The position numbers and the translations under genes were made by a program. A stretch of 64,000 nucleotides of DNA, taken from positions 62,001 through 126,000 of the IMG/VR virus record IMGVR_UViG_3300028364_000014. One strand, 5' to 3'. This document shows positions 39,588-63,719 of this stretch, piece after piece. Positions within the stretch are counted from its first letter, which is position 1. Every line of letters begins with the position of its first letter. Below the pieces are notes generated by a model that searched no databases, was not told the DNA's origin, and saw only the letters and a program-made list of their open reading frames with translations.

Positions 39588-40388
39588 ATGAGAACTATAG
39601 AGATTATAAGCAGTAGATATATAGGAAGAAATAATTTTCCAACAACTAATTTTAAAGATAGTCAATTTCAATTAGGCATTCCTTCAGAATTCAATAAGTT
39701 TGGAAATATAACAAAAATAATGGGAACTTTAAAGTGTAGAGAATCTATAACTCATCATTTTGTAAATACAGTAAATAGCAGCAAGGCTTTTGTAAAAACA
39801 TTAAATAAAGCTAGAGTAATAATAACAGGATTTAATGTAGAAGAAGCAAAAGTATTAAGATTGAAGAAAACCTTAAATTTTATTCATAGAATTGAGAAGG
39901 AATCTAATATATCTCCTCTTACTAGTATAAAAGAGGTTATTACTCCATGGAAATTACCATACAAAGTATTTATGTTTGAAGGTTCAAATAAATGGTATCG
40001 TTCTTCCCACACCATGTCACTTTGGCATTTAATTTTAAGATCTTGTTCTAGAGATGAAGGACTTGCTTCAACAACTACAAAAGAGGAGGTTCTAAAATAC
40101 ATAAATAAGTGGAAAGCAGAAGTTAAAACTAATGGGCAGTTTTGGGAAAAAGAAGATCAAGCACATATTAAAAGTACTTATAATAATTGGGTAAATTTGA
40201 TGAAAAATATTAATGAAATATTTCCTAAAAATGTGCATTGGGCAAATAGATACAAGGCAGATAAAACATTTAATAAACCTTCTGCCGATTGTTACTATCC
40301 TTCAACACATAGGGATGGAATAAGAAATTTTATAACCGGAAATTCTCCACATAAAGCTTTAAAAGCGTTTGAAAAATTTAAGGAGTAA
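39588..40388 (+). CDS. paralog family C protein
   Basis: CRE, LNFIHRIEK, W....HTMSLWHLILR, HRDGI. Confidence 0.65.
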   Translation: MRTIEIISSRYIGRNNFPTTNFKDSQFQLGIPSEFNKFGNITKIMGTLKCRESITHHFVNTVNSSKAFVKTLNKARVIITGFNVEEAKVLRLKKTLNFIHRIEKESNISPLTSIKEVITPWKLPYKVFMFEGSNKWYRSSHTMSLWHLILRSCSRDEGLASTTTKEEVLKYINKWKAEVKTNGQFWEKEDQAHIKSTYNNWVNLMKNINEIFPKNVHWANRYKADKTFNKPSADCYYPSTHRDGIRNFITGNSPHKALKAFEKFKE

Positions 40389-40391
40389 TAA

Positions 40392-41165
40392 ATGAAATCA
40401 TTAAATCCACTAATAACAATGTTTCTAATAGTTATTTTAATAGGATCTGCAACAATTGCATTAATTCATTTTATTATCGTACCATTCTCCTCGGAATATT
40501 CAAAACTTCAACTTAAATACGAAGAACAAACCAATGACCTTCAATCTATGACTAAGCAATACCAATTGGCTAAAGTACTTGTACAAAATAAACAAGATGA
40601 ATTAAGTTTATTAAGTTTAAAAGCATATATTGAAGATACAGTGGATAATCTCTCATTAAATGCAATAGAGCTAGTTTCTAAAGCTATTACAGGATATCAT
40701 CGTGAATTTGGTATACCTATTAGTATATTAGTAGGTATGATTGAAGTAGAAAGTATGTTTAATACCACTGCGTATAATAAGTCAGGTGCTAGGGGACTAA
40801 TGCAAGTTATACTCCGATACCATGAAGAAACTTTGAACGGGGTTGTAAAGATAGGAAAAGAACTACACGATCCTTCCATAGGAATTAGAGCAGGCATAAC
40901 AGTACTTAATAATTATTTATCTATAGAAGAGAATAATTTAGAAAAAGCTCTTCATAGGTATAATGGATTAAATGGCGAAAAGGGAGTATACTCATCAAAG
41001 GTGTATGCTGTAGCTTGTAAATATGAAATGTTTAGAACCAAGTACTTTTTCCGTAATGACCACACTCTTAATACTGCAAATATAATGAAAGAACTACAAG
41101 AAAATAACACTGAAGTAAAAACTTCTAGCGAAGAGGAAATGTTTAAGGAGGATGAAATTGAATGA
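40392..41165 (+). CDS. membrane-anchored lytic transglycosylase (SLT domain)
   Basis: N-terminal TM; IEVES.FN, GARGLMQV, ALHRYNG. Confidence 0.88.
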   Translation: MKSLNPLITMFLIVILIGSATIALIHFIIVPFSSEYSKLQLKYEEQTNDLQSMTKQYQLAKVLVQNKQDELSLLSLKAYIEDTVDNLSLNAIELVSKAITGYHREFGIPISILVGMIEVESMFNTTAYNKSGARGLMQVILRYHEETLNGVVKIGKELHDPSIGIRAGITVLNNYLSIEENNLEKALHRYNGLNGEKGVYSSKVYAVACKYEMFRTKYFFRNDHTLNTANIMKELQENNTEVKTSSEEEMFKEDEIE

Positions 41166-42358
41166 GGGCTATACAAAAAGTAGCTAAAAATTTTAGTGGT
41201 TTAACTTCTTTAGCTGGAGAATTACGAAATCATTATGGCTTATCTGCTAAATTTAATAGCTTTAATGGAGAAGAAATACTACACGTTTCTATAAATTCAG
41301 ATATAACACCAAAACTTCCCGCATCAGATGACGCTAATCCAATAATATTCAATAGTAAAGCAAAAATTATTGCAGTAGGACTTCCTAAAATACATCAGTT
41401 ACTATCAGACAATTCTAAAATGTGGTTTGATGCCGGAATGTCTGGTGCTACTATTGAAAAAATGTATAAAGGCACTAAAGTAATAGCCTCACAAGACAAT
41501 GATAAACTTATTGTTTGTACTAAATTAGATCCTCATGGTTGTAACATGATTCCAGAAACAAACATTTCGGTATATTCATTATTTACCTATCTTATAGATC
41601 AAAGTGAAGGTAGTATACAGGATTTGTTTGATAGTAATTATCGATATAATAACCTTAGTTGGGAATTTATGGCAGTAAAGAAAGAATTCATGCCGCCAAA
41701 TTCTAAATTAAGTTACGAATTATTTTTAATTGGCGCAATCAATAAAGCAACTACAAACCCACTTCCTTCCCTTAGACTAGATTATGTGGCTGAAAATATA
41801 GGAATACGTAGACCAGAAAGAAAAATAGTTTCTTCCTATGAAGAAGCCCATACTATTTTTAAAAAGTGGACTTTAGAAAATAAAAATCTTAAAGGTGTAG
41901 TGATATCTGACTCAATAGGTAATGTGGCTTCTATTTTAACTAAAAAACATAACAAGTCCTATGGCTATTGTAAAGCTCCTGCAAGACATAACTTACTAAA
42001 AATATTAGAATGGATGATGGAAGGGGAGGAGGACAAGGCTGTTTGCTTTGACCTTAGGTATAGGGTACTAGTAAACTCAATGAGGTATGTGTTCGAAAAA
42101 GCAATAAAAGAATTGATAGTATTACAGGGTGATTACGGTAAAGCAAGAACTAGGAAACATTTAGCCTCTAAAATCGCAAATCATGATTTAGCAGTTGTTT
42201 TATTTGCTCTGCACTCAAATAAAATTGAATCATTTAATGATATTAGTAAAGTACTTAAACCACATTACTTATTAAAAGTAATAGAAAATAGGGATAAATT
42301 AAGAATGCAAGGAGTGCTTAATTTAAGTAAAGGAGTTTTATGTCAGAAAAAATTGTAA
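41162..42358 (+). CDS. T4 Rnl1-like protein with degenerate motif I
   Basis: IIAVGLPKI, EKMYKGT in place of EKxDGS, WEF, L.LIGA, KGVVI. Confidence 0.45.
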   Translation: MRAIQKVAKNFSGLTSLAGELRNHYGLSAKFNSFNGEEILHVSINSDITPKLPASDDANPIIFNSKAKIIAVGLPKIHQLLSDNSKMWFDAGMSGATIEKMYKGTKVIASQDNDKLIVCTKLDPHGCNMIPETNISVYSLFTYLIDQSEGSIQDLFDSNYRYNNLSWEFMAVKKEFMPPNSKLSYELFLIGAINKATTNPLPSLRLDYVAENIGIRRPERKIVSSYEEAHTIFKKWTLENKNLKGVVISDSIGNVASILTKKHNKSYGYCKAPARHNLLKILEWMMEGEEDKAVCFDLRYRVLVNSMRYVFEKAIKELIVLQGDYGKARTRKHLASKIANHDLAVVLFALHSNKIESFNDISKVLKPHYLLKVIENRDKLRMQGVLNLSKGVLCQKKL

Positions 42359-43194
42359 ATTGGTTTACACGTAATTATGGTGGATTTTTAAATGAAGACT
42401 ACCAACCAACTGGAATGAAATTTTCTTTTTACACAGAAAAGGATAATAAATTAACACAATGTCATGAATGGGTAAAGTGTAAAGATTATTTACATGATGT
42501 GATAAGAACTTCTTTAACCGGAGAAGATACAAAAATATACGGATTTCAATTTTCTAAAGAAAACAACCCCTGCATTGATCTTACTAAAACTAGAATGCTT
42601 GTCTCCTGGGCTGGTTTTAAAGACGCTAATCTTGTAGAGCCAAGTCTTATCAATGGGGTGAAATTACTTAATCATCTAGAAAAGATAGCTAATGTCAAAC
42701 TAAGTAAATTTGAAAAAGTTATGGGGGACAAGGAGAACTCATTTTATCATGTTTGGGCGATTGAAAGTCCAAAGTTTTGGATGACACACCCACACCTTAT
42801 TTCATTATATTCTTTTTTGTTAAGGTTAGGAGATAAAAAACTTGAATTTACTGATGAGAAATCTTTTGATGAAGTCATTAATGGGTTATTTATTAAATAT
42901 AAAAATCAGCCCGAAAAAGATGTAGATTATTTAATAGAAATTTATGAAAACATGCATAATTCTATTACTAAAAAAGAAATACTATCTAATGTAAATAAGA
43001 ATGGTTTTTCAGTAATGTATTCAGAGTTAATGAGTATTAATGCATTTCATAATAGATCTGGTATTGTAAGTACCTGTCAAGGAATTACTGGATCTGAAAA
43101 TTTAAATTTATTAGTAAAAAAACATTTTAAAAACACTTTAAGGAGTAGTACACATGACAAAAGAAGTAAAGAAAGAAAAGAAAAAACTTATTAG
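42340..43194 (+). CDS. paralog family C protein
   Basis: CKDYLHD, LLNHLEK, W....HLISLYSFLLR, HNRSGI. Confidence 0.65.
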   Translation: MSEKIVNWFTRNYGGFLNEDYQPTGMKFSFYTEKDNKLTQCHEWVKCKDYLHDVIRTSLTGEDTKIYGFQFSKENNPCIDLTKTRMLVSWAGFKDANLVEPSLINGVKLLNHLEKIANVKLSKFEKVMGDKENSFYHVWAIESPKFWMTHPHLISLYSFLLRLGDKKLEFTDEKSFDEVINGLFIKYKNQPEKDVDYLIEIYENMHNSITKKEILSNVNKNGFSVMYSELMSINAFHNRSGIVSTCQGITGSENLNLLVKKHFKNTLRSSTHDKRSKERKEKTY

Positions 43195-43957
43195 AGTAAG
43201 AATGGCTCCTGCTTTAATAAAAGCTAATCCATATCGGTCAAGTATAACTGACCATAACTTGCATTTTTCTTTAGTAGGACCTCAGGTTTTGAAAAAAGAC
43301 GATATTCAATTTAGGCATCAAATAAGTAAATTTGTTACTTGTCGAGAAGAATTGTGCTGCATGCCTAGGCAGTATATAAACAAAACTAGTAAATATGTTG
43401 CTAGTGAAAAAGAAGATCATCTAGATTTGGAAAAATTTCGTCTACTAATGGCTAGTAAAGGAAATAAAGAAGTTAGAAAACGTGGTATTTTTTCAGCAAA
43501 GCGAGTTTTAAATATTCTAGAAGAAAAAGCGGGCTGGGAAAAAAGTGTTATTACTACCGTTATATATGAACCAGCAAAAGACGCTAACGTGTATCTTTTA
43601 ACTGGAGATAAACGATGGACAATGGCTCCGCAAATGATGTCTTTAGCTACTTTAATCATACGTATTGGGTGGAAAGGGTTAGGGTTTTCTTCAGAAAATA
43701 TTGAAGAAGTACAAACGGAATTTGCAAAAATTTCAGAAGATGAAGAAGAAAATGATAATCGTTATATGAAATCCTGTCAGAAATACATAATCCCTTTAAT
43801 GGCTAATGTAGAAAAAGTTTTTTCTGGAGAAATTAACCAATATTTTCCAGAAGACGCTGATTTCGGATTTAGAGGGCATGGCGGTATATACACCTTTTTT
43901 ACAGAACGTAGTGGTAATGAAAAATTAGATGAACGTCTAACAAAGTATGTTAAATAA
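43154..43957 (+). CDS. paralog family C protein
   Basis: CREE, VLNILEEK, W....QMMSLATLIIR, HGGI. Confidence 0.65.
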   Translation: MTKEVKKEKKKLIRVRMAPALIKANPYRSSITDHNLHFSLVGPQVLKKDDIQFRHQISKFVTCREELCCMPRQYINKTSKYVASEKEDHLDLEKFRLLMASKGNKEVRKRGIFSAKRVLNILEEKAGWEKSVITTVIYEPAKDANVYLLTGDKRWTMAPQMMSLATLIIRIGWKGLGFSSENIEEVQTEFAKISEDEEENDNRYMKSCQKYIIPLMANVEKVFSGEINQYFPEDADFGFRGHGGIYTFFTERSGNEKLDERLTKYVK

Positions 43958-43969: not shown

Positions 43970-44899
43970 ATGACATCAAAAATTATGATGGGAACCGATC
44001 CAGAGTTTTTCATGAGAAGACTAGAAGACAACAAACTTATTTCAGCAGTACCATTTATTGCTGGAGGTAAACATGACCCTATTAAGTTAGAAAAATCTGG
44101 AGGAACACTTCAACATGACAATGTAGCAGTAGAGTTTTCAACAGTTCCAGCAAATTCTCCGCAAACTTTTGTTGACATTCTCCGCGCTACTCTACAAGAA
44201 ACGATTTCTAAGTTGCCTCCTGGTCATGAACTATTGGCTTCAGCTTCTGCTGTATTTGATGATAATCAGCTTAATACTCCTGAAGCGCAGGAGTTTGGAT
44301 GTACACCTGATTATGATGCGTGGGAAGTAAAAGAGAATGACTCACCGACCCATCCAAACGCTAAATTTAGGTCATGTGGTGGACATTTACATATTGGATG
44401 TCTTGATATGGAAGGTAAACTTACACATGAGGATGCAAAATTTCTATTAACTTTTGAAGGTAAGCTCGATATGGTAAAAGGTATGGACCTATTTTTAGGC
44501 ATTATCTCTACTGTACTCGATAGTTCACCTGAAGCAGTTGAGCGCAAGAAGCTTTATGGTAGAGCTGGGTGTCATCGAGGTACACTATATGGTGTAGAAT
44601 ATAGGGCATTGAGTAACTTTTGGACTAAATCACCCATGCTATCCATGCTAATGACTTCTCTTTCGGAAGATGTAGTAGAAGTTATTATCAACGAAAAACT
44701 TGAAGCTTTAATTGAAGAAGTAGGCGCTGAGGATATCCAACGAATCATTAACACTGGTGCAGTAAAAGATGCTGAAAAGATCATAGAAAATGTTCTAACA
44801 GCGTATCTTAGCGAAGATTCAAAGTTCTATCTAGAAGAATGTCTTATTAAATTAGATAAAACAGATACAATTGAGAAGGAATGGTCAATTGGGGCTTAA
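43970..44899 (+). CDS. phiEco32-like COOH.NH2 ligase type 2
   Basis: GTDPEFF, DNVAVEF, GCTPD, RSCGGHLHIG, YGRAG..R...YGVEYR.LSNFW. Confidence 0.88.
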   Translation: MTSKIMMGTDPEFFMRRLEDNKLISAVPFIAGGKHDPIKLEKSGGTLQHDNVAVEFSTVPANSPQTFVDILRATLQETISKLPPGHELLASASAVFDDNQLNTPEAQEFGCTPDYDAWEVKENDSPTHPNAKFRSCGGHLHIGCLDMEGKLTHEDAKFLLTFEGKLDMVKGMDLFLGIISTVLDSSPEAVERKKLYGRAGCHRGTLYGVEYRALSNFWTKSPMLSMLMTSLSEDVVEVIINEKLEALIEEVGAEDIQRIINTGAVKDAEKIIENVLTAYLSEDSKFYLEECLIKLDKTDTIEKEWSIGA

Positions 44900-45639
44900 T
44901 TTTTACACCTAAGCTCATAATACCCACATCCTGGAAGCTTGTGTGCCTTCTTATGACATGTTTTGCATAAAGTAATGGTGTTAGCCACATCATTTCCTAA
45001 ACGTGGATTCTGGGTGTATCCTTCGATGTGATGGCAATGTAGTGGAGCTTCATTTTGAGTTGCTCCACAGATTTGGCACGTCCAGTTATCTTTTTCAAAA
45101 CACATTTGTCTAACTAGTGGATTTACTTCGCGAGAAGATGCAGGTTTGAATCCTTTAGGGTATTTAATTTGTTTGTACACAGGGCAAGCCTCTTTACAGT
45201 TATTTGAGCAGTAAAGAAAATGGTCTTTACCTATAGAGTCTAAAGCCTTTACTCTACTATTAACACTGCATCTATTAGGGATAAAGTATTTTCCGCAATA
45301 CCTACATTTTACTTCTAAAGAAACACCGTCATTAGCTAATCTAGGGAATTCTTCTTTAGTTAATTCACCAATAAATAATTTATATTTTGCATTAGAGTTT
45401 TGGTATGATTTACATCTTATAGAAGTACTAATTTTATTTTCCTTATAGTACTTTTTATATTGTTTTTTATGTTTATTTTTATTTTTTAATCGGTAATTAA
45501 TGATATAATTTTTATTATTCTCACGATCAATTTTTATACATTTTTTACAATAACTAGTTACTCCATCCTTAGTGTTTTTATTTTTATTAAATTCACTATA
45601 ACTTTTTAATTCTTTACATTTACTACACATTTTTTTCAT
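44896..45639 (-). CDS. HNH endonuclease (homing-type)
   Basis: CSKC N-terminus; DNWTCQICG...HCHH...N.ITLCKTCH. Confidence 0.88.
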   Translation of the reverse strand: MKKMCSKCKELKSYSEFNKNKNTKDGVTSYCKKCIKIDRENNKNYIINYRLKNKNKHKKQYKKYYKENKISTSIRCKSYQNSNAKYKLFIGELTKEEFPRLANDGVSLEVKCRYCGKYFIPNRCSVNSRVKALDSIGKDHFLYCSNNCKEACPVYKQIKYPKGFKPASSREVNPLVRQMCFEKDNWTCQICGATQNEAPLHCHHIEGYTQNPRLGNDVANTITLCKTCHKKAHKLPGCGYYELRCKN

Positions 45640-45781: not shown

Positions 45782-46660
45782 ATGATTATTGCTATACCCA
45801 CAAATAACGGAGATACCTACAAAGAAGTACCAGTAAGAAAACAAAACGCTTCTTATTGCAAACACGTAGAAAATGCTGGATTTGATCCAATCCTCATTCC
45901 TATGGAGTGTTCTATTGAAGCAGTAGCAGACATGTCCGATGGGCTTCTACTGGCAGGAGGGCTAGATATAAGTCCAATGTATTATGGTTTTAGTAATTTG
46001 GCGTCATTTGGTGTAGACCCTGACAAAGACGCACATGAAAGAGCTCTACTACATGCTTTTATTGCGCTAGGTAAACCAGTGTTTGGAATATGTAGAGGAC
46101 ATCAGCTTATTTTAAGGGAGTTTATGCATGTTACTAATGACATGGATAATATCCTTGAATATGAAGAACATATTAAATATCACGCACAAACAGGTGAGTT
46201 AAATATGGGAAGAAAACACCCTTCTCATATGACGCAGACAGTAATTAATTCTTTATTTACTGAGTCTATAGTAGATAATGATGAAGCTATAGAAAATTTT
46301 CCAGTAAATAGTATGCACCATCAAGCTGTAACCGCAAATATTGTAAAAATGGCAGTCGGTAATGGGAATGTTCCACATGATTTTCAGTATAATATTCCTC
46401 CAGTAAAGGTATATGAGAATTTTGAACTAATTTCCTGGACTAAAAGAGGATATACACAGCCTGATGTACATTCTAAAAATTTCGATAGAACTGATCATAG
46501 AGTAGTTGTTGAGGCAATGAAAATTGATTGGAATAACTCAAAAATTATGGGAGTACAATGGCATCCAGAATGTCTTGGTGATGTTCGTATTATACGTAAT
46601 TTCTTTTTAAATGCTGTTGAAAACATAAATGATGATGCAGCAATTGCAGCTCTAGGCTAA
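45782..46660 (+). CDS. class I glutamine amidotransferase (peptidase C26 family)
   Basis: GLLLAGG.DI, GICRGHQ, VNSMHHQA, QWHPE. Confidence 0.9.
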   Translation: MIIAIPTNNGDTYKEVPVRKQNASYCKHVENAGFDPILIPMECSIEAVADMSDGLLLAGGLDISPMYYGFSNLASFGVDPDKDAHERALLHAFIALGKPVFGICRGHQLILREFMHVTNDMDNILEYEEHIKYHAQTGELNMGRKHPSHMTQTVINSLFTESIVDNDEAIENFPVNSMHHQAVTANIVKMAVGNGNVPHDFQYNIPPVKVYENFELISWTKRGYTQPDVHSKNFDRTDHRVVVEAMKIDWNNSKIMGVQWHPECLGDVRIIRNFFLNAVENINDDAAIAALG

Positions 46661-46907
46661 TGGTACGTGGTTGGTCTACTAAAATTACTACTACTTATGG
46701 AACTCAACTACACCATTATATAACTTTAAAAGCATTAAAAAATACCATTAAACGATTAAAAAACAGCAGAATTAGTCCTTTAGCCATAAGATTTTATAGA
46801 CCAATGCTTCCATGGTTAATAGAAAATGTAACAGAAGATTCAGCTGTTTCTGGCGATATATCAAATATTAAAATAGAAGTTTCATTGTTAAATATAGGAG
46901 AAATAAA

Positions 46908-47216
46908 ATGAGTAAAAAATCAATAATTACGTCAATTCTTATGGATAATACAAAAATTCCCGCAATAGCTGCTGTACATTACGGTGTAGGGGATGTTCCT
47001 AAAACGAGTACTGGGGATGACGCTGGACAGCATGCAGTTACTTCAATTAAATTTGCAAGAAAATGTTTTGGTCAGGGGGCAGTAATAGATATTCCTTGTT
47101 ATGTAATTGAATTTGAAGATGTAGATGAAAAAGTAATTCTTGCAACTAATAGTATTGCTAGATGGACAATTGGAAACGAAGAAATAGATGCCGTTCCCCC
47201 TTTGGCTGCAGAATAA
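46908..47216 (+). CDS. hypothetical protein
   Basis: RBS aggag, ORF. Confidence 0.65.
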   Translation: MSKKSIITSILMDNTKIPAIAAVHYGVGDVPKTSTGDDAGQHAVTSIKFARKCFGQGAVIDIPCYVIEFEDVDEKVILATNSIARWTIGNEEIDAVPPLAAE

Positions 47217-47223
47217 GGAAATA

Positions 47224-47931
47224 ATGAATAATAAAATACTCGTGTTAAATGGTTCTTCTTACGCAACACCTTTTAAGGGGTTGGGTGAAATTGTTATCGA
47301 TATTGATGTGTTTTTGGAAAATCCAGGTGATTTTAAATTAGTGATGTTTACTGGAGGAGAAGACGTTACTCCTTCTTGGTATGGTGAAACAAGCCCTAAT
47401 CATGTATGCTATTATAATGAGCGAAGAGATAAAGAAGAAGCTATTGTATTTAAGTTAGCAGAAAGACGTGGAATACCTATGATGGGTATTTGTAGGGGAA
47501 TTCAATTTCTAAATGTTATGCATGGTGGAAAAATATTCCATAATGTTACTAATCACGCTGGTCCTAGACACATGATGACTCTTGGTAATGGTGAGGAATT
47601 TGTTGTGAATTCTTTTCATCATCAAATGGTAATACCTCCTGAAGATTCAATTGTAATAGCCTACTCGTCTACCCGTAAATCTACAAGCTATATAGGAGAT
47701 AAAGATCTAGAAGTATCTCCTCCTAATGTAGAGGTAGAAGCAGTAGCTTATCCTAATACCAAAAGTGTGGCAGTCCAATATCATCCTGAAATGATGGATA
47801 CGACTTCTAAAGGGTTTCTTTGGTTTAGAGAACTAGCGACTACCCTATTAACAGAAGAAGGTTTCGCTGAAATTATTGAAAAATATTCCTCGGTGAATAA
47901 ATGTCTAAAACAAAGTACGCATCAGCTATAA
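47224..47931 (+). CDS. second class I glutamine amidotransferase (C26 family)
   Basis: FTGGEDV, GICRGIQ, VNSFHHQ, QYHPE. Confidence 0.9.
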   Translation: MNNKILVLNGSSYATPFKGLGEIVIDIDVFLENPGDFKLVMFTGGEDVTPSWYGETSPNHVCYYNERRDKEEAIVFKLAERRGIPMMGICRGIQFLNVMHGGKIFHNVTNHAGPRHMMTLGNGEEFVVNSFHHQMVIPPEDSIVIAYSSTRKSTSYIGDKDLEVSPPNVEVEAVAYPNTKSVAVQYHPEMMDTTSKGFLWFRELATTLLTEEGFAEIIEKYSSVNKCLKQSTHQL

Positions 47932-51033: not shown

Positions 51034-51068
51034 AATCAGTAAATGCTATTAAAGGGAGATCAATATCC

Positions 51069-54000: not shown

Positions 54001-54536
54001 AACATGGTGGCATTTCATTGTGTGAAATTGTACTTGAAGCTGTATGTACGGGTGATATTGACACACTAGTAAAAGAAGGTTATGATGCAGAAGTAACTAC
54101 TCTTATCTGTAAAACCATTGATAGAAAAGCCAAGAGTATAGGAATCAATGACCTTAAAGATTATCATTACAAAATAGGTATCCACGGTTCCAATATTGTA
54201 AATCGCATTGTGAAAACTGAAAATAAAGTCTATTTTGCGAGCCGTTCAGATTTAGATACCTATAGTCTTTTAGAATGCCTTTCTTCACCGGTTGTGGATC
54301 TCCCTAGTCGTATATTTGCACTTACTATGTCTGGTAAATACAATAACGAACGTAATTTCTTGATTGAGGAAAAAGAAAGAAAGATGTTATCAGCAATTAA
54401 AGATGATGATTTGAGAAAAGGTTGTACAGATTTGTTTGGACTTATTGATAAAATGATGGGTAATGTTAAAAAAGGAGCAACAATTAGCAATAATGTTAGG
54501 CTAGGTTCTTGCTTGTTGAAAAAAAGTATAAAATAA
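51069..54536 (+). CDS. single-chain two-barrel DNA-dependent RNA polymerase (beta-like + beta'-like)
   Basis: beta-like HHNPQRNL, NFEDQV, TKLTNTHGNKGV, IDVIV; beta'-like VERFPCL and NLDFDGD; start at ATG after gggag. Confidence 0.88.
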   Translation: MTSIEITTQVETMANLIRDQFTSRTEIEGRRTGKDFRGAKMDITFTNGQMWITVVLEDEAHTITVPIPYIENGVELIKSNEVKRSICKHFDVTNNIEISYLDVIQKIFIGDPIGLVTNIKVKKSSFVQQIAYSILNKNTSIIIYNLQKAISEIVNKMPLHETFMNSYIMNQRLMMVDPVFNRMSSPQDLLDYQIDKNKYYFNNGWTSVGLSDGTLANKNYILKKDIKALTVFGIHHHNPQRNLFSTLGMRGDELPQLRSASAQELIESGITRTGWNLFTLFADVPDNFEDQVLVDISHKDKAIISERRFQCFGEILVKEGQRIKLGDSLVKCSDGEITSYQVKADESWIHKIIKSHTVVGGVKTEVYNVLIKFKRFLKDATKLTNTHGNKGVIRLFDLGYAIDPATGKPRKIDVIVSAKSVKRRKNYGQIFEALVNVVHERNTAEVNTPEISSISNWSKRGVAVTSKITSKVLPIKPLIYADNYTFDDEKEAQLKQNLIDSGIPEDGTWRCDTYVGEIYGVCGTVFWGVTKEPEDQLWAEGATERTNGKDLRVAGLKFSTVEFKALETHFGIDNAVSREVLSYTQGIENIDETLQILRSQFGIITKNVPTKKVYEIKSVDQSNGTIFTKESLLDTVADENMLRDGFILHLPVQFQTAVGIKNSDSYEGAPVFDPAMMDWSVFKVLYTTDKIYIPEGSMRRNWRHSTGMYGMSEIAVLINNIIMFSNNYLAEPNEAHHIRMLYNALRNYFFRMSSSVGTKKGDVSSYAMSVRYPYSAKAVATLSTTIPPQTIQIHSDMANSLKVTEGDVVIVERFPCLGFMGIRPQKVTITDDPMCKYTIRASGNSLVSTNLDFDGDVIYIAAFHTPEAVALLQKEWLTPNPETWKYIDQLNKRKGEPCINLLSLPEYEMTPFTALTCEDQAGIVRKLTGVKAQTGPVIAMAYNIMRIMENSGNELTNAQQASIEMFIEKTGQSVFEQKHGGISLCEIVLEAVCTGDIDTLVKEGYDAEVTTLICKTIDRKAKSIGINDLKDYHYKIGIHGSNIVNRIVKTENKVYFASRSDLDTYSLLECLSSPVVDLPSRIFALTMSGKYNNERNFLIEEKERKMLSAIKDDDLRKGCTDLFGLIDKMMGNVKKGATISNNVRLGSCLLKKSIK

Positions 54537-54545: not shown

Positions 54546-55475
54546 CTAATCTCTGATGCATTGAAGTTCGTGATAATTGCATCCTGGGAGCTTATGTACC
54601 TCTTTATGACATGTTTTGCATAAAGTAATGGTGTTAGTCACATCATTTCCTAAACGTGGATTCTGGGCGTATCCTTCGATGTGATGGCAATGAAGTGGAG
54701 CTTCCTTTTGGGTGGCTCCGCAAATTTGACATCTCCAATTATCTCGCTCGAAACACATTTGTCTAACTAGAGGATTAACCTCACGGGAGGATGCGGGTTT
54801 GAATCCTTTAGGATAAAGTACTTTTTTATAAATTGGACAAGCTTGTTTGCAGTGGTCAGAGCAATATAAAGACTGTTCTCCAAGTACTTGACCTAATAGT
54901 GATTGAATTCTACGATAAGTTTGTGCCATATAAGGAATAAAATATTTACCGCAGTATCTGCACTTGACTTCTAAAGAAGTACCATTTTTAGCAAGCCTTG
55001 GTGCTTCATCAGTAGTTAATTTATCTTTAAATACTTCATATGTAGCATTAATATTATTACGTTGCTTGCTACGGATAGATATTTCTTCTTTATTATTAAT
55101 TCGATATTGTTTATCTCTTATAGCTATTCTTTCTTTATTATCTTGATAATATTGATCCATTTGTGCTTTTCTTTTTTTTCTCACTAAAGTGAATTTTTCT
55201 GTGTTATCGTCATAATATTGTTTTCGTTGCTTTGCAATTTTTTCCTTATTATCAATGTTATATTGTTTAGCCTTTTTTGCAATACTTTCTTTGTTACTAA
55301 TTTGATATTGTCGTTTTCGTTTAGTTATTTTTTCTTTATTATCAATTTGATATTGTTTTCTTTTTATAAGTATACATTCCTTACATTCTTTTCTATAATC
55401 ATCGATACTATTTTTTCTTTTATAAAACTCGCTTAAATCTTTTAACTCTTTACATTTAGTGCAAATTTTTTTCAT
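54546..55475 (-). CDS. HNH endonuclease (homing-type), paralog of 44896..45639
   Basis: near-identical C-terminal YPKGFKPASSREVNPLVRQMCFE.DNW.CQICG...HCHH...LCKTCH. Confidence 0.88.
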   Translation of the reverse strand: MKKICTKCKELKDLSEFYKRKNSIDDYRKECKECILIKRKQYQIDNKEKITKRKRQYQISNKESIAKKAKQYNIDNKEKIAKQRKQYYDDNTEKFTLVRKKRKAQMDQYYQDNKERIAIRDKQYRINNKEEISIRSKQRNNINATYEVFKDKLTTDEAPRLAKNGTSLEVKCRYCGKYFIPYMAQTYRRIQSLLGQVLGEQSLYCSDHCKQACPIYKKVLYPKGFKPASSREVNPLVRQMCFERDNWRCQICGATQKEAPLHCHHIEGYAQNPRLGNDVTNTITLCKTCHKEVHKLPGCNYHELQCIRD

Positions 55476-56958: not shown

Positions 56959-57510
56959 ATGTATAAAAACAATAGACGTAAGAAAAAGAAACAAAAACTA
57001 TTACATAAAGCTAAATTTAAACAGATGTTTTGTACTAAATGCGGTATTTGTCCTATCGGAAGTAACCCGAAATTTTGTTATGGTGTATTGTATAAAAACA
57101 ATCCAGAACAATTTACTAATGTAGTTTTTCCTAAAATGATGGAGAATCATGATATATTAAAAGATCAGATAGTTCCAGATTTTGAGGGAAATACACTTTT
57201 AATTACCGCATTTTTTAATAATATACTGTGTGATGACGAAATATGTACAAAGTGTACAAAAAACAAAGATACGGATAAAATATTAAATTGTTTAGCTAAA
57301 TTCAGATTACAGTGTAAACCGGGGTATCAAACTGTACAAGAAATTAAGAATCAATCAAAAAAGGAACGAAAAGCTCAAAATAAAATTAAACAGGCAAATA
57401 ATTTAAAACTTAAAGCTAATGCTACGGTTACTGTATTAATGAGTACTGACGCAGAGTTCCTTGAAGCGGTGGAAAAAATACTTGGAAATAATAATAAGCA
57501 ACAAAATTAA
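56959..57510 (+). CDS. Cys-rich hypothetical protein
   Basis: FCTKCGIC, C...CTKC. Confidence 0.6.
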   Translation: MYKNNRRKKKKQKLLHKAKFKQMFCTKCGICPIGSNPKFCYGVLYKNNPEQFTNVVFPKMMENHDILKDQIVPDFEGNTLLITAFFNNILCDDEICTKCTKNKDTDKILNCLAKFRLQCKPGYQTVQEIKNQSKKERKAQNKIKQANNLKLKANATVTVLMSTDAEFLEAVEKILGNNNKQQN

Positions 57511-59962
57511 AATTAAAGATCCGCACCCAGTCATAAAAGAAATTCTTCTTGAACAATTAAAGCACAATAATCCTAAGTATGTAGACGCAGAGAAAATGGG
57601 CAAAAGTACTTATAAGATTGATGAATTTCTATGCAATTATGAATTTGACGAGGATAGTAGCATGTACATACCAAGAGGTATGCGAGGTCCTTTATTAGAG
57701 CATTTAAATGCTTTAGGACTACCGACTCAAATAAGTGATGAACGTGCTATGAACTTTATAGGGTATCTAGACGGATCTAAAATAAATTATCGTAAATACC
57801 AACAACCTGCTATAGAAAAATTGTTACATGAAGGGCCAGAAGGAGTTTTAGTGGCTCCACCAGGGAGTGGTAAAACTGTTATGGGATTAAGTTTAATTCC
57901 TGTACTATTACAAAATACATTATGGTTAACTCATACAGATAGACTATTTAAACAAACTTATGAAAGGTGTTTAGAATTTTTACCAGGACTTAAAGAAGAT
58001 GATATCGGTATGATTGGAGGAGGAAAATGGAAAATTGGTAAAGTACTTACTATAGGAATGATTCCTACACTAGTAAGAAACATTGAAAAATTAAGTGAAT
58101 TAAAAAATCACTTTGGTCTTGTTGTCTTGGATGAGTGTTTAATAGCTGGTACTAAAATAACCATGCTTGATGGTACTTCTTGTAATATAGAAAATGTAAA
58201 AAATGGAGATGTTACGACCTTTGGAAAAGTAACTAATAAATTTGAAAGAAAAACAGATTCGTTAGTAAAACTGAGATGTTCTATAGAAGAACTCGTTGGT
58301 ACGCCTACACATCAATTACCTTTTATATCGAGAAATAAAGTATCAATTAATAAACATACTAATTCGTGGGAGCCTTTCAATGAAAAAGATGTAACTTTTG
58401 AAGAAATAAAAAATATAAATAAAAATGATTATTTATTAGTGAAGGAAGATGCACCACATACAGAGAGATTTAATATAGGAAAAAGAAAAGCAAGATTACT
58501 GTCTTTAATAGCGTGTGATGGACACATAGAAAAGAATTTAAGGTGTCTTCAGGTAGGTATTACAAAAGATAAAGATTGGTTCTTATCCGAAATGTGGCAA
58601 AACACTTTAATCTATAATGATCATAACATACACTTTAGCGACTGTGCTAGAGGAGATTTAATAATAAGAAGTTATTCAAAGAAGTCTATTGCAGATATGC
58701 ATCATTATATTCCAAAAGGTAACAAATCAAAAAACATTCGAGTTCCTCATATAATAATGAATGGAAGTTACGAAGATATAATTAATTACTTACAAGTAGC
58801 TTTTGATTGTGAAGGCAGTGTGACAGACCAAATAACAATAACTATGGCAGGTAAAGATTTTATTAAAGATATACAGTCCTTATTACGTAAATTTGGTATT
58901 ATAGGTAGATTAATTCCTATACCATCTAAAGACCATTTAAGACTGGCAATGACTGGTTATGATGCGTTTTTATTTTGGAAAAAAATAGGATTTTCCATGC
59001 CAAGAAAACAACAAAAATTAAAAGAGCTGTTAAACAAAGCTAGTAAATATCGAAAAATAATAAAATTTCGTGGCATTTCGTATAGATGTGTAAGAGTACT
59101 AAACAAAGAAATAATAAACAAAAGTACAACAGTATATGATTTCACCACGGAACAGCACTTATTTATTGCTAATGGGATATTAAGTTCAAATTGTCATCAT
59201 TGTCCAGCTTCAACATTTTTATCGGTTATCTCGCAATTAAACCCTTATTTCTTGTATGGACTAACAGCTACTGCTTATCGAAGAGACAAGTTAGAGTCTA
59301 TGATGTTTCAATGTCTAGGTCCTATAAGATCAAAAATTACTAAAGATACAGTTGCTGCACATAAGGGTATTATATCTCCTAAAATTATATACACAGCTAT
59401 TAAGCATTTACATAAAGTAGATGGTAATGATATTCCAACTATCTTTAAAAATCATATTATATATAATCATAAGCGTAATGCTCAAATAGTGAAGGATGTA
59501 GTAAGAGAAGCTAAATTAGGTAATTTTTGTATCATAGCTTCTGGGAGGAAAGTCCATTGTGATTTGCTACATGAAATGATTAAAAAAGAGTGGAGTAGGA
59601 CAGGGGTTGCTACTGGAAATTATAGTAAGAAAATAATTGATGGTCAAATTGAGGCATTTAACAACAACGAAATAACGGTACTAATAACAACCTCAGAATT
59701 ACTTGGAGAAGGTTTTGATGTTGATTTTTTAAATAGGTTATTTATTACAACACCCTTTAGAACAGAAGCTAGGGTAGAACAGTTAGTAGGCAGAATTCAG
59801 CGTTTTCACAAAGATAAAAAGGACGCAATTGTTTATGATTATGTCGATGAAGGCATAGGTGTATTAGTTAATCAATTCTATTCTAAGTACGGAGAATGTA
59901 GGAGTAAAGTTTATAAGAGATTGGGACTCGAAATGCTATCCTACGATCAACACGTATTATAA
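57461..59962 (+). CDS. superfamily 2 DExH helicase containing an intein
   Basis: YQQ, APPGSGKT, DE|CHH after splicing, GLTAT, GEGFD, QLVGRIQR. Confidence 0.9.
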   Translation: MKRWKKYLEIIISNKIKIKDPHPVIKEILLEQLKHNNPKYVDAEKMGKSTYKIDEFLCNYEFDEDSSMYIPRGMRGPLLEHLNALGLPTQISDERAMNFIGYLDGSKINYRKYQQPAIEKLLHEGPEGVLVAPPGSGKTVMGLSLIPVLLQNTLWLTHTDRLFKQTYERCLEFLPGLKEDDIGMIGGGKWKIGKVLTIGMIPTLVRNIEKLSELKNHFGLVVLDECLIAGTKITMLDGTSCNIENVKNGDVTTFGKVTNKFERKTDSLVKLRCSIEELVGTPTHQLPFISRNKVSINKHTNSWEPFNEKDVTFEEIKNINKNDYLLVKEDAPHTERFNIGKRKARLLSLIACDGHIEKNLRCLQVGITKDKDWFLSEMWQNTLIYNDHNIHFSDCARGDLIIRSYSKKSIADMHHYIPKGNKSKNIRVPHIIMNGSYEDIINYLQVAFDCEGSVTDQITITMAGKDFIKDIQSLLRKFGIIGRLIPIPSKDHLRLAMTGYDAFLFWKKIGFSMPRKQQKLKELLNKASKYRKIIKFRGISYRCVRVLNKEIINKSTTVYDFTTEQHLFIANGILSSNCHHCPASTFLSVISQLNPYFLYGLTATAYRRDKLESMMFQCLGPIRSKITKDTVAAHKGIISPKIIYTAIKHLHKVDGNDIPTIFKNHIIYNHKRNAQIVKDVVREAKLGNFCIIASGRKVHCDLLHEMIKKEWSRTGVATGNYSKKIIDGQIEAFNNNEITVLITTSELLGEGFDVDFLNRLFITTPFRTEARVEQLVGRIQRFHKDKKDAIVYDYVDEGIGVLVNQFYSKYGECRSKVYKRLGLEMLSYDQHVL
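58136..59191 (+). mobile_element. intein (352 aa) with LAGLIDADG homing endonuclease
   Basis: starts CLIAGTKI, block B TPTHQ, LSLIACDG and LQVAFDCEG, ends VYDF...ANGILSSN before +1 Cys. Confidence 0.9.
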
Positions 59963-59996
59963 AACAGAAGTCAGCACAAAAATAAAGGACTTCAAT

Positions 59997-61193
59997 TTGG
60001 ATAATTTTAAAATAAAAATTTCAAACACAATGACAGAACAAATGGGTTTATATGGTAATGAGAATCATATGATCCGAATACCTAAGGTTTTACGTACTAA
60101 TTTACAACGCAATCTAGGAGAACGTATCCCATTTACCTGTGTTCAAGGTAAGCCTGTGGTATTAGAAATATCAGAAGCATTTAAACATGACTCAGAGCAA
60201 GATAGTAGTGTTTGTTATGTAACTGAAGAAACATTTAATACAATAAATATTGAACGTACTCCGATATACATACCTAAGCAAATAGAAACTATAACTTTGG
60301 GATGTGACCCAGAATTCTTTTTATTGGATAGACAATCGAAAAAATTACTTAGGGCTTATATGTTTTTTAAGAAATTTGGTGAAGTTGGTAATGATGGAAT
60401 ATTAGCAGAATTTAGACCTAAACCAACATTAACCCCACAAGATCTTACTAATAATATTTACAAACTAATTGTGAAAACAAAAAAGCTTTTAAGTACAAAT
60501 TCAATACATAATCCTGATGATATTATACTACATGCAGCTTCAAGTTATGAAGGATATACTGCGGGATTTCATTTACACTACGGATTACCTAAAGAGATGC
60601 TGGGTAGAAAATCAGATAGACTAGTGGTTATTAAAAAAATAATGAGAGCTCTAGATTATTATATAGGTATTCCAGCTATTATGGCGGAAGAAGTAACTGA
60701 TTTTAAACGAAGAGTGAATACATATGTGTCTTATGGTAAACCCAGTGATTTTAGAATTGATCATAGAACTTTAGAATATCGAGTTCCAGGAGGAAGTCTT
60801 TTAAGACATCCTGATCTAACATTAGGATTAATTGCTTTAGGATCTACTGTAATTACTGACCTCATGATTAAAGTGAAGTCTATAACTAATGAATTTAAAC
60901 ACTTAAGTTTTATGAATAATGATGATCGTTTGCAAGAAATATACCCGAATACACCAAGAATAATGACTATGTATGAAATTATATGCTCTCCAAACACAGA
61001 TAGAGCTAAAACATATTTGGATAGTATATATAATGATATAACTAGAATGATTGATTTTAATAAAAACAGCAAGGCAATTAATAAATTATTTACTATTTTG
61101 TCTAATAATAAAGAACTAATTGACCAAGGAATGGAATTAAACTGGAGGAATACCTATGAACAACGACATCACTTTCACCAAACATCCAATTAG
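59997..61193 (+). CDS. second COOH.NH2 ligase type 2 with extra N-terminal domain
   Basis: LGCDPEFF, DG..AEFRP, TAGFHLHYG, YGKP..FR....LEYR. Confidence 0.82.
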   Translation: MDNFKIKISNTMTEQMGLYGNENHMIRIPKVLRTNLQRNLGERIPFTCVQGKPVVLEISEAFKHDSEQDSSVCYVTEETFNTINIERTPIYIPKQIETITLGCDPEFFLLDRQSKKLLRAYMFFKKFGEVGNDGILAEFRPKPTLTPQDLTNNIYKLIVKTKKLLSTNSIHNPDDIILHAASSYEGYTAGFHLHYGLPKEMLGRKSDRLVVIKKIMRALDYYIGIPAIMAEEVTDFKRRVNTYVSYGKPSDFRIDHRTLEYRVPGGSLLRHPDLTLGLIALGSTVITDLMIKVKSITNEFKHLSFMNNDDRLQEIYPNTPRIMTMYEIICSPNTDRAKTYLDSIYNDITRMIDFNKNSKAINKLFTILSNNKELIDQGMELNWRNTYEQRHHFHQTSN

Positions 61194-62844
61194 AGACTGT
61201 CTTAACGCCGCAGATGTTGCTTATTGGCGAAGGTCTTTACCCAGACTACTAAAAGTTGGTTTGGAATTTGAATTTAATCTACCAGACAAAGATAACGGTA
61301 CTTGTAAAGGTAAAAGTTTTACTTGTCCTTGTGTAAGTTTTGGTAAAGAAGAACTAACTTGTTGGCAAAAATGTTTGAGAGAGAAAACATGTAGCGCAGA
61401 CAAAAATACTACAAAGTGTAAAAATTTTGATTCTTCTGTATGCACCGATGAAATGTGTGCTGCTTGTGATAAGTATGATTTTCTATGTTCTACATATAGT
61501 TGTTCAAATTACGTATCAGCGTGTAGTACATGTACTGATTTTAAAATGAATTGTAACGATTGCCAGTACCGATTTGATCCAAATAAAAACCCTGAAGCAA
61601 TTAGATCCGCGTGCATTAATGAATTTAATCCTAGTGGAACTTATGGTAAAATTGCAAAATCAGGAGTACATAAAGTTGTAACAGACGGATCTTTGTTAGG
61701 TGGAAAAGGAATGGAAGTTATAACTACTGGAAGAAGAGTAGACTATTGGGAATTTTTCAAGATGTCTGATAAAATTATTAATAATGCTGTTGCTCGTGGT
61801 GCTTATGTAAATGAAAGATGTAGTATTCATATGCATGGATTAGCATCTTATTATGGGCAAGTCAAAGGATTGGACCCTTCTTCTAATTCAAAAATTGATG
61901 AACTAGAAAGATCTGTTCCTGAAATTGTATTGGCTAATTTCCATCAATTGATTAGACGTTACCAAAACGCCATGACTTGGATGTCGGTTGGTTTAGATGA
62001 CCCAGCACATATTACTAGATGGGAAAAATTTAGAATGTCTGTTCTTGATGTCCCGGCTGTAACAGAACATATGAGAAAAGTTAAAGATGCTATTGTTCAA
62101 AAAAGTGGTGGAACCAAGTATGGGCTAGCTAATTATAAATTTTGTGGATTTGACAGTAGTGGACAAGTTAATAGACTACATGTTGAATTACGAGTAATGG
62201 ATGGGTTATTGTCTCCAAGTGCTGTAGCCGCTTTTTCATGTCTATATTATGCACTATTCATAAAAGCTGTGGAATTATCTAGGTATGGTGTAATGGATGC
62301 AGGTAACGAGGCTTGGCTAAAACAATCTACTATTATCAAGAATGCAATAATGAATGGTGCGTCTTCTTGGGATGAAGCGCGGGATACAGGAAGGTTTAGT
62401 GATACTTCCGAATTACATAAATACACAGATATTTTAGTAGCTGAATCGTACGAGATGATTTCAATGCTTAAGCACATACTAAGTTCGATTGGTCCAGCTT
62501 ATGAGGTTCTTGAAAAATTGGCAGAGGCTCCTTGTGGTATTAGAAGATGTGAAGGCAAATCTTGGGAGGATATTGAAAAAGATCTTGCTGTGGAGCTTAC
62601 TGAAGAAGGAGCTACTGAGTATGAGATACAAAAAATTATTGCTACACGCGCAGTTATAAAATCCGCATCTCTTGAAGAGTGGACAAAATGTGTAGCTAAG
62701 CTTCTTAAAGAAAAAAATGAGTTAGAAATTTCAAAGGAATCTGAAGAAGAAATAGCTGATAGAGTCGCTATACATATTGAAGATAGTTATGCTAATGGAA
62801 ATATGTTGTGGGCTGATAAAATTGGTTCAGTTATAGCAGTTTAA
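61156..62844 (+). CDS. putative amidoligase with Cys-rich insertion
   Basis: VGLEFEF, TDGSL...GMEV, CSIHMH, VELR. Confidence 0.8.
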   Translation: MNNDITFTKHPIRDCLNAADVAYWRRSLPRLLKVGLEFEFNLPDKDNGTCKGKSFTCPCVSFGKEELTCWQKCLREKTCSADKNTTKCKNFDSSVCTDEMCAACDKYDFLCSTYSCSNYVSACSTCTDFKMNCNDCQYRFDPNKNPEAIRSACINEFNPSGTYGKIAKSGVHKVVTDGSLLGGKGMEVITTGRRVDYWEFFKMSDKIINNAVARGAYVNERCSIHMHGLASYYGQVKGLDPSSNSKIDELERSVPEIVLANFHQLIRRYQNAMTWMSVGLDDPAHITRWEKFRMSVLDVPAVTEHMRKVKDAIVQKSGGTKYGLANYKFCGFDSSGQVNRLHVELRVMDGLLSPSAVAAFSCLYYALFIKAVELSRYGVMDAGNEAWLKQSTIIKNAIMNGASSWDEARDTGRFSDTSELHKYTDILVAESYEMISMLKHILSSIGPAYEVLEKLAEAPCGIRRCEGKSWEDIEKDLAVELTEEGATEYEIQKIIATRAVIKSASLEEWTKCVAKLLKEKNELEISKESEEEIADRVAIHIEDSYANGNMLWADKIGSVIAV

Positions 62845-62864
62845 ATAATAAATAAAGGAATTAT

Positions 62865-63719
62865 ATGTGTTCAATATTTGGAATGGGGTTTTTCAAGAAA
62901 GATAGGATAAACTCCTTTTTACTAAGAAATGCACTAAAGTCATTAACTTTGAATGCTCAAGCTCGTGGTAGAGATGCGACTGGCTTAGCATTCACTACTA
63001 AAACATCAACTGATGTTTTTAAACATAATGTGTCAGCTAAAAAATTCATTGAATTGGAAAATTATCGCGAAGTAGTACGAAAACATACCAAAGATAACAT
63101 ACCCCTTTATTCAATTCTTGGGCACTGCAGAGCTAAGACTTTAGGTACACAATTAAACCCTCTTAATAATCACCCGATCACTACCAATAATATAGTTGGT
63201 GTACATAACGGTGTAATAAGTAACCATGATGGTGTATTTACTACATTAGAAGCAACAGCAGCTAATTATGATGTCAAAAGAGCTGGGCAAGTAGATAGTG
63301 AGGCTATTTTTAGAGCCATTGACCTTTATGCTCATCAGTATAAAAACCCTACTGACTCAGCAGGAAAAGTATTACTTGGGCATATTGCTAATCCGGTAAC
63401 TAAAGCCATACAGTCCGCAACTAGACTACTGAATGGATCGTTTACTTGTGCTATAGTAGATATCGAAAATCCAGAGTGTTTATGGGTATTTAAGCACTCT
63501 AACCCAGTTACTATTTATTTGTATAAAAAAGAAGGATTTTTAGTATTTGCTTCTCTTGAAAATTTTTTAGAAGCTTCTTTAGGGTCTATAGGCTTATCAG
63601 TACCAGAAAAAATAGAACTTACTAATGATACTGGGATTTGTTTTAATTTAATGAAAGGGGTATTTAGTAAATTTAATTTAGCAGAAAGTAGTAATGACTC
63701 AAAAGTCTTAAGTAAATAA
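62865..63719 (+). CDS. class II (Ntn) glutamine amidotransferase
   Basis: N-terminal MC, RGRDATG, GHCRAKT, NNHP, HNG, DSE. Confidence 0.9.
   Translation: MCSIFGMGFFKKDRINSFLLRNALKSLTLNAQARGRDATGLAFTTKTSTDVFKHNVSAKKFIELENYREVVRKHTKDNIPLYSILGHCRAKTLGTQLNPLNNHPITTNNIVGVHNGVISNHDGVFTTLEATAANYDVKRAGQVDSEAIFRAIDLYAHQYKNPTDSAGKVLLGHIANPVTKAIQSATRLLNGSFTCAIVDIENPECLWVFKHSNPVTIYLYKKEGFLVFASLENFLEASLGSIGLSVPEKIELTNDTGICFNLMKGVFSKFNLAESSNDSKVLSK

Follow-up and report, generated by a model that had tools for sequence, protein, structure and literature searches.

We analysed a stretch of 64,000 nucleotides (the window), which comprises bases 62001-126000 of the linear 237,910-bp IMG/VR virus record IMGVR_UViG_3300028364_000014 (CheckV completeness 87%), and studied the amide-ligation genes at positions 39588-63719. 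These genes form two co-oriented, tightly packed modules (A and B), not a single block, and together encode an enlarged, re-architected variant of the enzyme set of phiEco32- and LUZ24-type phages. The whole toolkit comprises four ligases of the glutamine synthetase (GS)/GCS2 fold, two ATP-grasp proteins, a GNAT protein, two Ntn and two C26 hydrolases, and a gamma-glutamyl(amine) cyclotransferase (GGACT). The set is larger than described in an earlier, sequence-only reading of the window: module B runs on for ~7 kb past the window end, and a second ATP-grasp gene, paired with a gene of a family that we call famX, is located ~5 kb further on. Thus, the ATP-grasp gene which that reading proposed to look for beyond position 64000 exists, in two versions. 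We lean toward reading both modules as parts of one conserved, operon-like enzyme system, in which module B would act as the writer and module A would attach and remove gamma-glutamyl groups.

Module A contains, in this order, a famX gene, an SLT gene, a gene for a 398-amino-acid (aa) unknown protein, famX-A, famX-B, ligase 1, an HNH gene on the opposite strand, C26a, two small-protein genes, and C26b. Module B contains ligase 2, the amidoligase, a short class II glutamine amidotransferase (GATase; GAT-II short), a variable protein, GAT-II long, ligase 3, an ATP-grasp protein, and the GNAT protein. Gaps within the modules range from -62 to +32 nt, and the sole large gap is the site of the HNH gene. 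Positions labeled L004 refer to the locus that continues downstream past the window end (L004:1752 is window position 63752). Related genomes are designated G001, G002, and so on; G002, G006 (295,848 bp, with terminal repeats), and G007 (297,725 bp) are complete. The main toolkit genes are as follows.

35205..35588, + strand, GGACT/AIG2-like gamma-glutamyl(amine) cyclotransferase (PF06094, 68.6 bits; YGTLK, D.IEG)
39588..40388, + strand, famX paralog (famX hidden Markov model [HMM], E 1.3e-16; positional homologs in G002 and G003)
42340..43194, + strand, famX-A (269 aa in the database version, so that the start is probably 42385)
43154..43957, + strand, famX-B, a paralog of famX-A (famX HMM, E 1.5e-52)
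43970..44899, + strand, COOH-NH2 ligase 1 (PF14395, 42.3 bits; phrog_3815, 197 bits; GTDPEF, GGHLHIG, VEYR)
45782..46660, + strand, C26a, class I GATase/Peptidase C26 of the gamma-glutamyl hydrolase type (PF07722, 108.7 bits; GICRG, WHPE)
47224..47931, + strand, C26b, class I GATase/Peptidase C26 (47188-47931 in the Pfam scan; PF07722, 82.8 bits; GICRG, YHPE)
59997..61193, + strand, COOH-NH2 ligase 2 (PF14395, 83.7 bits; GCDPEF, GFHLHYG, LEYR)
61156..62844, + strand, putative amidoligase of a divergent GCS2/GS/PafA fold with a Cys-rich insert (structure model and conserved motifs)
62865..63719, + strand, GAT-II short, stand-alone class II (Ntn) GATase (PF13522, 45.3 bits; N-terminal MCSIFG)
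63752..64000 and onward (L004:1752-2897), + strand, variable 381-aa protein, weakly conserved, running past the window end
L004:2930-4816, GAT-II long, 628 aa (PF13522, 41.3 bits)
L004:4835-6130, ligase 3, 431 aa (PF14395, 91.1 bits)
L004:6139-7296, RimK-like ATP-grasp protein, 385 aa
L004:7235-7705, RimI-like GNAT protein, 156 aa (RRKGFG motif present)
Downstream of RuvB-like, sigma-like, and CCA-adding genes, second ATP-grasp protein, 255 aa, with a famX gene next to it

The gene identifications of the sequence-only reading held up: Pfam supports the GGACT, the SLT protein, two COOH-NH2 ligases, two class I GATases, and the class II GATase. A genome scan with PF14395 (curated cut-off 25 bits) gave three matches here and none in 14 control genomes, and all three ligases contain the GS/GCS-type metal and ATP motifs G.DPEF, G.H.H.G, and E.R. 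Catalytic motifs are likewise intact in the GAT-II, C26, GGACT, ATP-grasp, and GNAT proteins. Both C26 proteins have the Cys-His-Glu triad motifs in addition to their HMM match, and the GGACT combines its HMM match with a YGTL-type motif and the catalytic Glu; its D.IEG motif is kept in four genomes. The two GAT-II proteins start with MCSIFG and MCGILG, respectively, placing Cys directly after Met, and RG.DA.G, NNHP, and VDSE (the R..D, N.HP, and D.E elements of class II enzymes) are found in both and in their relatives. Pfam at E 10 detected no second (synthase or acceptor) domain in either protein. GAT-II short consists of the glutaminase domain only, and the C-terminal 330 residues of GAT-II long are of low complexity, K/E-rich, and helical. 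As judged from their domain content, neither appears to be a complete amidotransferase of the GlmS, PurF, or AsnB type.

The 255-aa ATP-grasp protein scored above the cut-offs of two models (ATP-grasp_3, 26.1 versus 23.2 bits; Dala_Dala_lig_C, 26.7 versus 24 bits). The 385-aa protein reached 20.8 bits with RimK (cut-off 21 bits), contains the motif IIEVNTGPG, and matches tf gp24 (E 1.5e-13) and GAP52 gp36 (E 5.6e-16); the Mg-ATP motif E.N..PG is present in the ATP-grasp proteins. Below threshold, the nearest NCBIfam models were RimK, MptN, and CofF for the ATP-grasps, RimI for the GNAT protein, GlmS-N and EgtC for the GAT-II proteins, and PuuD and gamma-glutamyl-CDP-amidate hydrolase (both below cut-off) for C26a.

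The protein encoded at 61156-62844 had been labeled an amidoligase. Searches of Pfam (up to E 10), PHROGs, NCBIfam, and PDB sequences gave no match, and Pfam PF12224 Amidoligase_2 (22-bit cut-off) matched nothing in the genome at E 1 and nothing in the protein at E 10. A structure model was built from an alignment of 29 homologs (pLDDT 75). When used in Foldseek, the model retrieved glutamine synthetases, gamma-glutamylmethylamide synthetase, and PafA (E 1.6e-5 and weaker). Conserved motifs are EFEF in the first strand, TDGSLLG..G.E, CSIHMH, and VEFR. The modeled GS/GCS2/PafA fold, together with the first-strand ExE, the H.H, and the E.R elements, argues for membership in the carboxylate-amine ligase superfamily. 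The label was thus right in substance, on the strength of the model, Foldseek, and the motifs; it was the one identification that Pfam did not support. DGSL and RCS.H.H are common to this protein and the Pfam-recognized amidoligase of phage tf, and the amidoligase of GAP52 has only the CS.H.H stretch in common with it. Residues ~48-136 (window 61300-61560) form an insert of ~90 residues with ~20 conserved Cys and many CxxC pairs, which was modeled at low confidence and may bind zinc or iron-sulfur clusters. A complex prediction for the amidoligase with GAT-II short yielded a score of 0.00, which weighs neither way.

Ligases 2 and 3 have an additional ~100 residues at the N terminus (~59997-60299 in ligase 2), and ligase 1 is without this extension. 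Searching PDB sequences with a profile of the extension (20 sequences) revealed reDPBB_sym2, a double-psi beta-barrel (DPBB) derived from VCP/CDC48-N, with E 6e-10. Weaker matches were to a natural AAA+ N-domain (E 0.0017), CDC48 (E 0.11), and VAT (E 0.53). We therefore assign the N-domain of both ligases, by profile comparison, to the DPBBs of VAT-N/CDC48-N type. In AAA+ unfoldases, such barrels bind substrate or adaptor proteins. This suggests a docking role for the DPBB of ligases 2 and 3, toward a protein or peptide or, with equal plausibility, toward a partner enzyme. No related loci were returned when ligase 2 was used as the lone query protein.

The sequence-only reading expected the genes to occur together in related phages, and they do. 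More than 500 clusters of amidoligase homologs were found at 47-65% identity, on contigs of up to 330 kb. In all 10 loci selected with the amidoligase, the order was RNA polymerase, helicase, ligase 2, amidoligase, GAT-II long, ligase 3, ATP-grasp, GNAT, and RuvB-like gene; GAT-II short was present in 6 of these 10 close relatives. To remove the selection bias of loci fetched with the amidoligase, the RNA polymerase was used as a second query. The helicase, ligase 2, and amidoligase genes followed downstream in this order in each of the 12 loci obtained, four of which have just 35-37% RNA polymerase identity; three of these four distant loci contain both GAT-II genes. The variable 381-aa protein, which lies between the two class II GATases and carries two tandem RPF.PVENPFDNKDPFEMVE copies near its C terminus, has no counterpart in the distant relatives G006-G008.

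In G001, G002, and G003, module A forms a compact block. In G006 and G007, it is located ~45 kb from the polymerase gene, in the order GGACT, famX, ligase 1, a 290-300-aa unknown, C26, famX. This linkage, which survives relocation, is the strongest evidence that GGACT, ligase 1, C26, and famX work together. C26b is kept in all five genomes. The GGACT gene lies between the two C26 genes in G001-G003 and beside famX and ligase 1 in G006 and G007, indicating that the gene has been displaced locally in the window (to 35205). The strong conservation of the set, seen in the identity and number of the amidoligase clusters, points to an important function that is probably essential in nature, not to a sporadic accessory gene. 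In G006, module A is followed by genes for a SpoU-type RNA methylase, an HNH protein, and an RlaP RNA-repair nucleotidyltransferase (L049:12745-15343).

The kinship with phiEco32-like phages, which the sequence-only reading had recognized, was supported by tblastn with ligase 1: it matched 319 cultured-phage records at 33-36% identity. They include Bruynoghevirus/LUZ24-PaP3, Krylovvirus tf, GAP52 and other Escherichia and Cronobacter phages, the Zobellviridae CW02 and CVT22, and Klebsiella phages. By sequence similarity, ligase 1 is assigned as the ortholog of the phiEco32/LUZ24/tf/GAP52 ligase. In those phages, the neighborhood is one block of genes for the COOH.NH2 ligase, a ~190-aa unknown, an amidoligase, a GAT-II, an ATP-grasp protein, and a GGCT, in some cases with a 215-aa GATase. 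A COOH.NH2 ligase, an amidoligase, a GAT-II, and an ATP-grasp protein, with or without GGCT, are thus encoded together both here and in the reference phages. As in the phiEco32, LUZ24, tf, PaP3, GAP52, and CW02 genomes, the set lies in the early/middle, replication-side region. In contrast to the phiEco32-type set, the one described here is divided into two modules and has three PF14395 ligases (two with a DPBB at the N terminus), an amidoligase that is too divergent for Pfam Amidoligase_2 and has a Cys-rich insert, two GAT-II, two C26, and two ATP-grasp proteins, a GNAT protein, and four famX proteins. HMM searches did not detect the podophage accessory proteins (tf17/18-like and tf20-like) in the jumbo phage, nor famX in the podophages.

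How could such a set function? In catalysis by GS/GCS2-fold and ATP-grasp enzymes, a carboxylate is activated as an acyl-phosphate and then joined to an amine. By analogy, the ATP-dependent carboxylate-amine ligases of module B would add amino-acid units successively to form a short chain, most likely of the glutamate or glutamine type, and the GNAT protein would cap the product by acetylating its free amine. The GAT-II proteins could either deliver glutamine-derived ammonia to a ligase for carboxylate amidation or act as EgtC-like gamma-glutamyl amidohydrolases. In module A, ligase 1 and three enzymes of gamma-glutamyl-amide-cleaving families would protect, trim, or recycle the unit. The glutamyl-type chemistry, the order of the steps, and the nature of the acceptor are all proposed here from such analogies, and the idea of the sequence-only reading that the genes encode a gamma-glutamyl-type write/erase pathway is plausible on the same grounds.

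The closest precedents are pathways in which a gamma-glutamyl group is attached and later removed. Removal is accomplished by C26 enzymes (PuuD), stand-alone GAT-II enzymes (EgtC), or GGCT-fold enzymes (BtrG), each paired with a pathway ligase: the GS-like PuuA with PuuD in putrescine metabolism, the GCS2 ligase EgtA with EgtC in ergothioneine biosynthesis, and the ATP-grasp BtrJ with BtrG in deprotection during butirosin biosynthesis. The same pairings of ligase and remover families, also known from the gamma-glutamyl cycle, are found in the modules. However, the matches to the specific enzymes are far below equivalog cut-offs, and the modules contain no oxidase, methyltransferase, PLP enzyme, or other pathway-specific partner. 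A second precedent is NAGGN biosynthesis, in which Ngg combines GNAT and ATP-grasp and AsnO is a GAT-II amidotransferase. Here, too, genes for a GNAT, a RimK-like ATP-grasp, and a class II GATase stand side by side, but the GNAT and ATP-grasp are separate proteins, the GAT-II proteins have no AsnB-type synthetase domain, and there are extra GS-fold ligases.

These precedents raise the possibility that the product is a free small molecule, such as a short capped nonribosomal peptide or a gamma-glutamyl conjugate. Candidates are a NAGGN-like N-acetylated, amidated di- to pentapeptide, a glutathione-like thiol, or a gamma-glutamyl-polyamine, which during infection could serve as a toxin, a signal, an osmolyte, or a compound with a redox or counter-ion role, with C26, GGACT, and GAT-II as deprotecting or recycling enzymes. 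We regard this as rather doubtful, though not negligible. It agrees with the proximity of C26a to PuuD and gamma-glutamyl-CDP-amidate hydrolase, of GAT-II to GlmS-N and EgtC, and of the ATP-grasps to RimK, MptN, and CofF, two of which act on cofactors. GNAT, ATP-grasp, and GAT-II proteins are combined in the same way in the NAGGN pathway, a conserved acceptor protein was not detected, and osmolytes would be relevant in the lake and salt-lake water in which the phage occurs. In contrast, a VAT-N-type barrel, a known protein binder, is present on two of the ligases, the AsnB-type synthetase domain of AsnO is missing from the GAT-II proteins, and the same set is carried by phages whose hosts (E. 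coli, Pseudomonas) make glutathione and polyamines themselves.

As the acceptor, we tentatively prefer a protein or peptide over a free metabolite, peptidoglycan precursors, or nucleic acid, because of the VAT-N-type barrel on ligases 2 and 3 and because the ATP-grasp and GNAT proteins are nearest RimK and RimI. The latter two recall the modification of ribosomal proteins. However, the scores are far below the family cut-offs (31.7 versus 143 bits and 41 versus 86 bits, respectively), and no S6- or S18-like target was identified here. A more specific version of the protein acceptor, which we consider unlikely, is a phage protein-conjugation system resembling pupylation or polyglutamylation. 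The DPBB-containing ligases would select host or phage proteins and build on them a short, acetyl-capped or amidated chain of the glutamyl type, famX proteins would be degenerate adaptors of the PafA/Dop fold, and C26, GAT-II, and GGACT would edit or erase the mark. In contrast to actinobacterial pupylation by PafA/Dop, no Pup-like tag and no proteasome/Mpa context were found, and the eraser candidates have other folds (C26, Ntn, GGCT). If this version is true, it would be a previously unrecognized post-translational takeover in a large clade of aquatic jumbo phages, with a reduced form in phiEco32- and LUZ24-like phages.

Two small proteins encoded between the C26 genes were considered in this context.

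46660..46911, + strand, small protein 1, 83 aa (open reading frames of similar size at the same place in G001, G002, and G003)
46908..47216, + strand, small protein 2, 102 aa, with an acidic tail (counterparts between GGACT and C26b in G001-G003)

Small protein 1 had no family match. Small protein 2 was rejected as a Pup-like tag, since its C-terminal residues vary even among homologs with 80-84% identity and among the positional counterparts. Generally, none of the small proteins of module A has a conserved C-terminal Gln or Glu beside a ligase, as a Pup-like tag would; their C termini are variable.

With no match in Pfam or PHROG, famX is a new family. Its four genes in this genome are located at 39588-40388, at the famX-A and famX-B positions, and after the second ATP-grasp gene; in G001, famX-A and famX-B are one fused gene (15859-17445). 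An exhaustive HMMER search yielded 2137 cluster representatives, many of which are tandem fusions. Foldseek searches with the famX fold gave no usable match in PDB or ESM Atlas and one significant match in BFVD (E 4.4e-08), an uncharacterized protein of an uncultured phage. A weak yet coherent GS/PafA/GCS signal was seen solely in a wide VIA search. Homology of famX to the podophage tf17 and tf18 proteins was not detected (hhalign probability ~1%, HMM searches empty); a short stretch, CR.FL..DAV, common to famX and tf18 is not significant.

The cell wall has also been named as a target of the phiEco32-type set. Iyer et al. reportedly predicted the set in 2009 and proposed a role in cell-wall modification. 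No product has been reported in the open, searchable literature, in agreement with the sequence-only reading; the literature repeats the 2009 prediction and names cell-wall modification, superinfection exclusion, or secondary metabolites. In this explanation, cytoplasmic peptidoglycan precursors or recycled muropeptides, which have a gamma-D-glutamyl bond and a carboxylate open to amidation, would be remodeled, blocking superinfection or tuning lysis. Stem peptides are made by ATP-dependent ligases, are amidated by the GATase-dependent MurT/GatD, and contain gamma-glutamyl links, and a membrane-anchored SLT protein is encoded within the stretch:

40392-41165, SLT protein with an N-terminal transmembrane helix and an EVES catalytic stretch

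The SLT gene had been taken as a hint at peptidoglycan. It has a counterpart in G003. However, no homolog was found in the first 50 kb of G001 or in the complete G002, which keeps the whole toolkit, and we therefore rejected the SLT as a member of the conserved set. Furthermore, the toolkit proteins have no evident signal peptide (N termini judged by eye), the modules contain no Mur-ligase, FemX-type, or D-amino-acid enzyme, and their neighbors are transcription, replication, and RNA genes, not lysis genes. Thus, we consider cell-wall modification improbable.

The second specific proposal of the sequence-only reading, that proteins ending in IW are alternative substrates of the enzymes, was not supported either: the complete G002 has the whole toolkit and no IW family, so that these proteins are not the obligatory substrate. 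The observation made in that reading was confirmed and extended, while its interpretation was supported in part. The window encodes eight IW proteins at 15048-26176. They are 88-97 aa long, belong to at least four unrelated sequence groups, and end with [CY][RKN][ST]IW.

15341, 15632, 17245, 19332, 20910, 23899, 24202, 26176, ends of the IW protein genes

Across the 238-kb genome, the 18-nt motif T[GA][TC]A..A...AT[TA]TGGTAA is restricted to the ends of IW genes, and synonymous variation was seen. The motif may represent a tag at the C terminus or, alternatively, an overlapping regulatory site.

The surroundings of the modules bear on nucleic-acid modification, in which an amino-acid-type group would be attached to, or amidated on, a DNA base, tRNA, or other RNA as protection against host nucleases. 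Replication, transcription, or RNA-repair genes surround the set in all lineages. Here they include genes for a helicase, the RNA polymerase, a RuvB-like protein, a CCA-adding enzyme, and Ro60; G006 has the SpoU methylase and RlaP, tf has primase/helicase and MazG, and GAP52 has RnlB. The Cys-rich, possibly zinc-binding insert of the amidoligase would also fit. However, no enzyme of a known hypermodification route was found in a scan that covered the modules and their neighbors, and proximity in the early/middle region of a phage genome is weak evidence. We consider this explanation the most improbable of those weighed here.

The source of the window is an uncultured aquatic jumbo phage. Its G+C content is ~30% in the window, and nearly all genes are on the + strand. 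DNA nearly identical to window positions 59997-63719 was present in numerous metagenome runs of lake water and salt lakes, produced in separate studies; there were no RNA runs among those matching. Among the cultured phages of INPHARED, no match was obtained with module B by blastn or with the RNA polymerase and the amidoligase by tblastn. A jumbo-phage survey from 2021 does not describe the enzyme set.

The phiEco32-type amidoligase set is among the most widespread phage gene sets without a known product. Hundreds of cultured podophages carry it, among them phages of Pseudomonas, E. coli, and Klebsiella that were isolated or characterized with possible phage therapy in mind. In uncultured jumbo phages of a deep and abundant clade, an enlarged set is kept under strong constraint. 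Our analysis defines a conserved core of co-traveling genes and adds famX, DPBB-fused ligases, and a Cys-rich amidoligase as new parts. Together with the removal of two false leads (SLT and IW proteins), this narrows the range of experiments needed to find the product. Given the strong conservation in this large clade and the existence of cultured relatives among the podophages, a 15-year-old question can be approached experimentally.

Two HNH genes were found in the region:

44896..45639, - strand, HNH endonuclease (PF01844), between ligase 1 and C26a
54546-55475, - strand, second HNH endonuclease, not at this place in relatives

Ligase 1 and C26a abut in G001-G003, with no HNH homolog at that place. 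Both HNH genes are probably mobile insertions; the first, which separates ligase 1 from C26a, is not part of the pathway.

Between modules A and B lie the genes for the RNA polymerase, the second HNH protein, small unknowns, and an intein-interrupted helicase. The RNA polymerase (51000-54536) is a single chain of 1178 aa in which a beta-like part (Rpb2_6) precedes a beta'-like part (Rpb1_2, NLDFDGD motif), and it is kept at 35-58% identity in 12 IMG/VR contigs. The SF2 helicase gene (57461-59962) is interrupted by an intein that contains a LAGLIDADG domain. In most relatives, the helicase lacks the intein and is 456-486 aa long; in G001, its length is similar to that in the window. Directly after module B (L004:8643-11859), there are genes for a RuvB-like AAA+ protein, a sigma70_r2-like protein (so annotated in one relative), and a CCA-adding enzyme with an HD domain. 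This trio follows module B in most relatives, and the CCA-adding enzyme was confirmed in four loci. Upstream of module A, a Ro60/TROVE protein with a vWA domain (35692-37338) is followed by a metallophosphoesterase (38215-38964). The complete G002 has no homolog of Ro60 and has one of the metallophosphoesterase.

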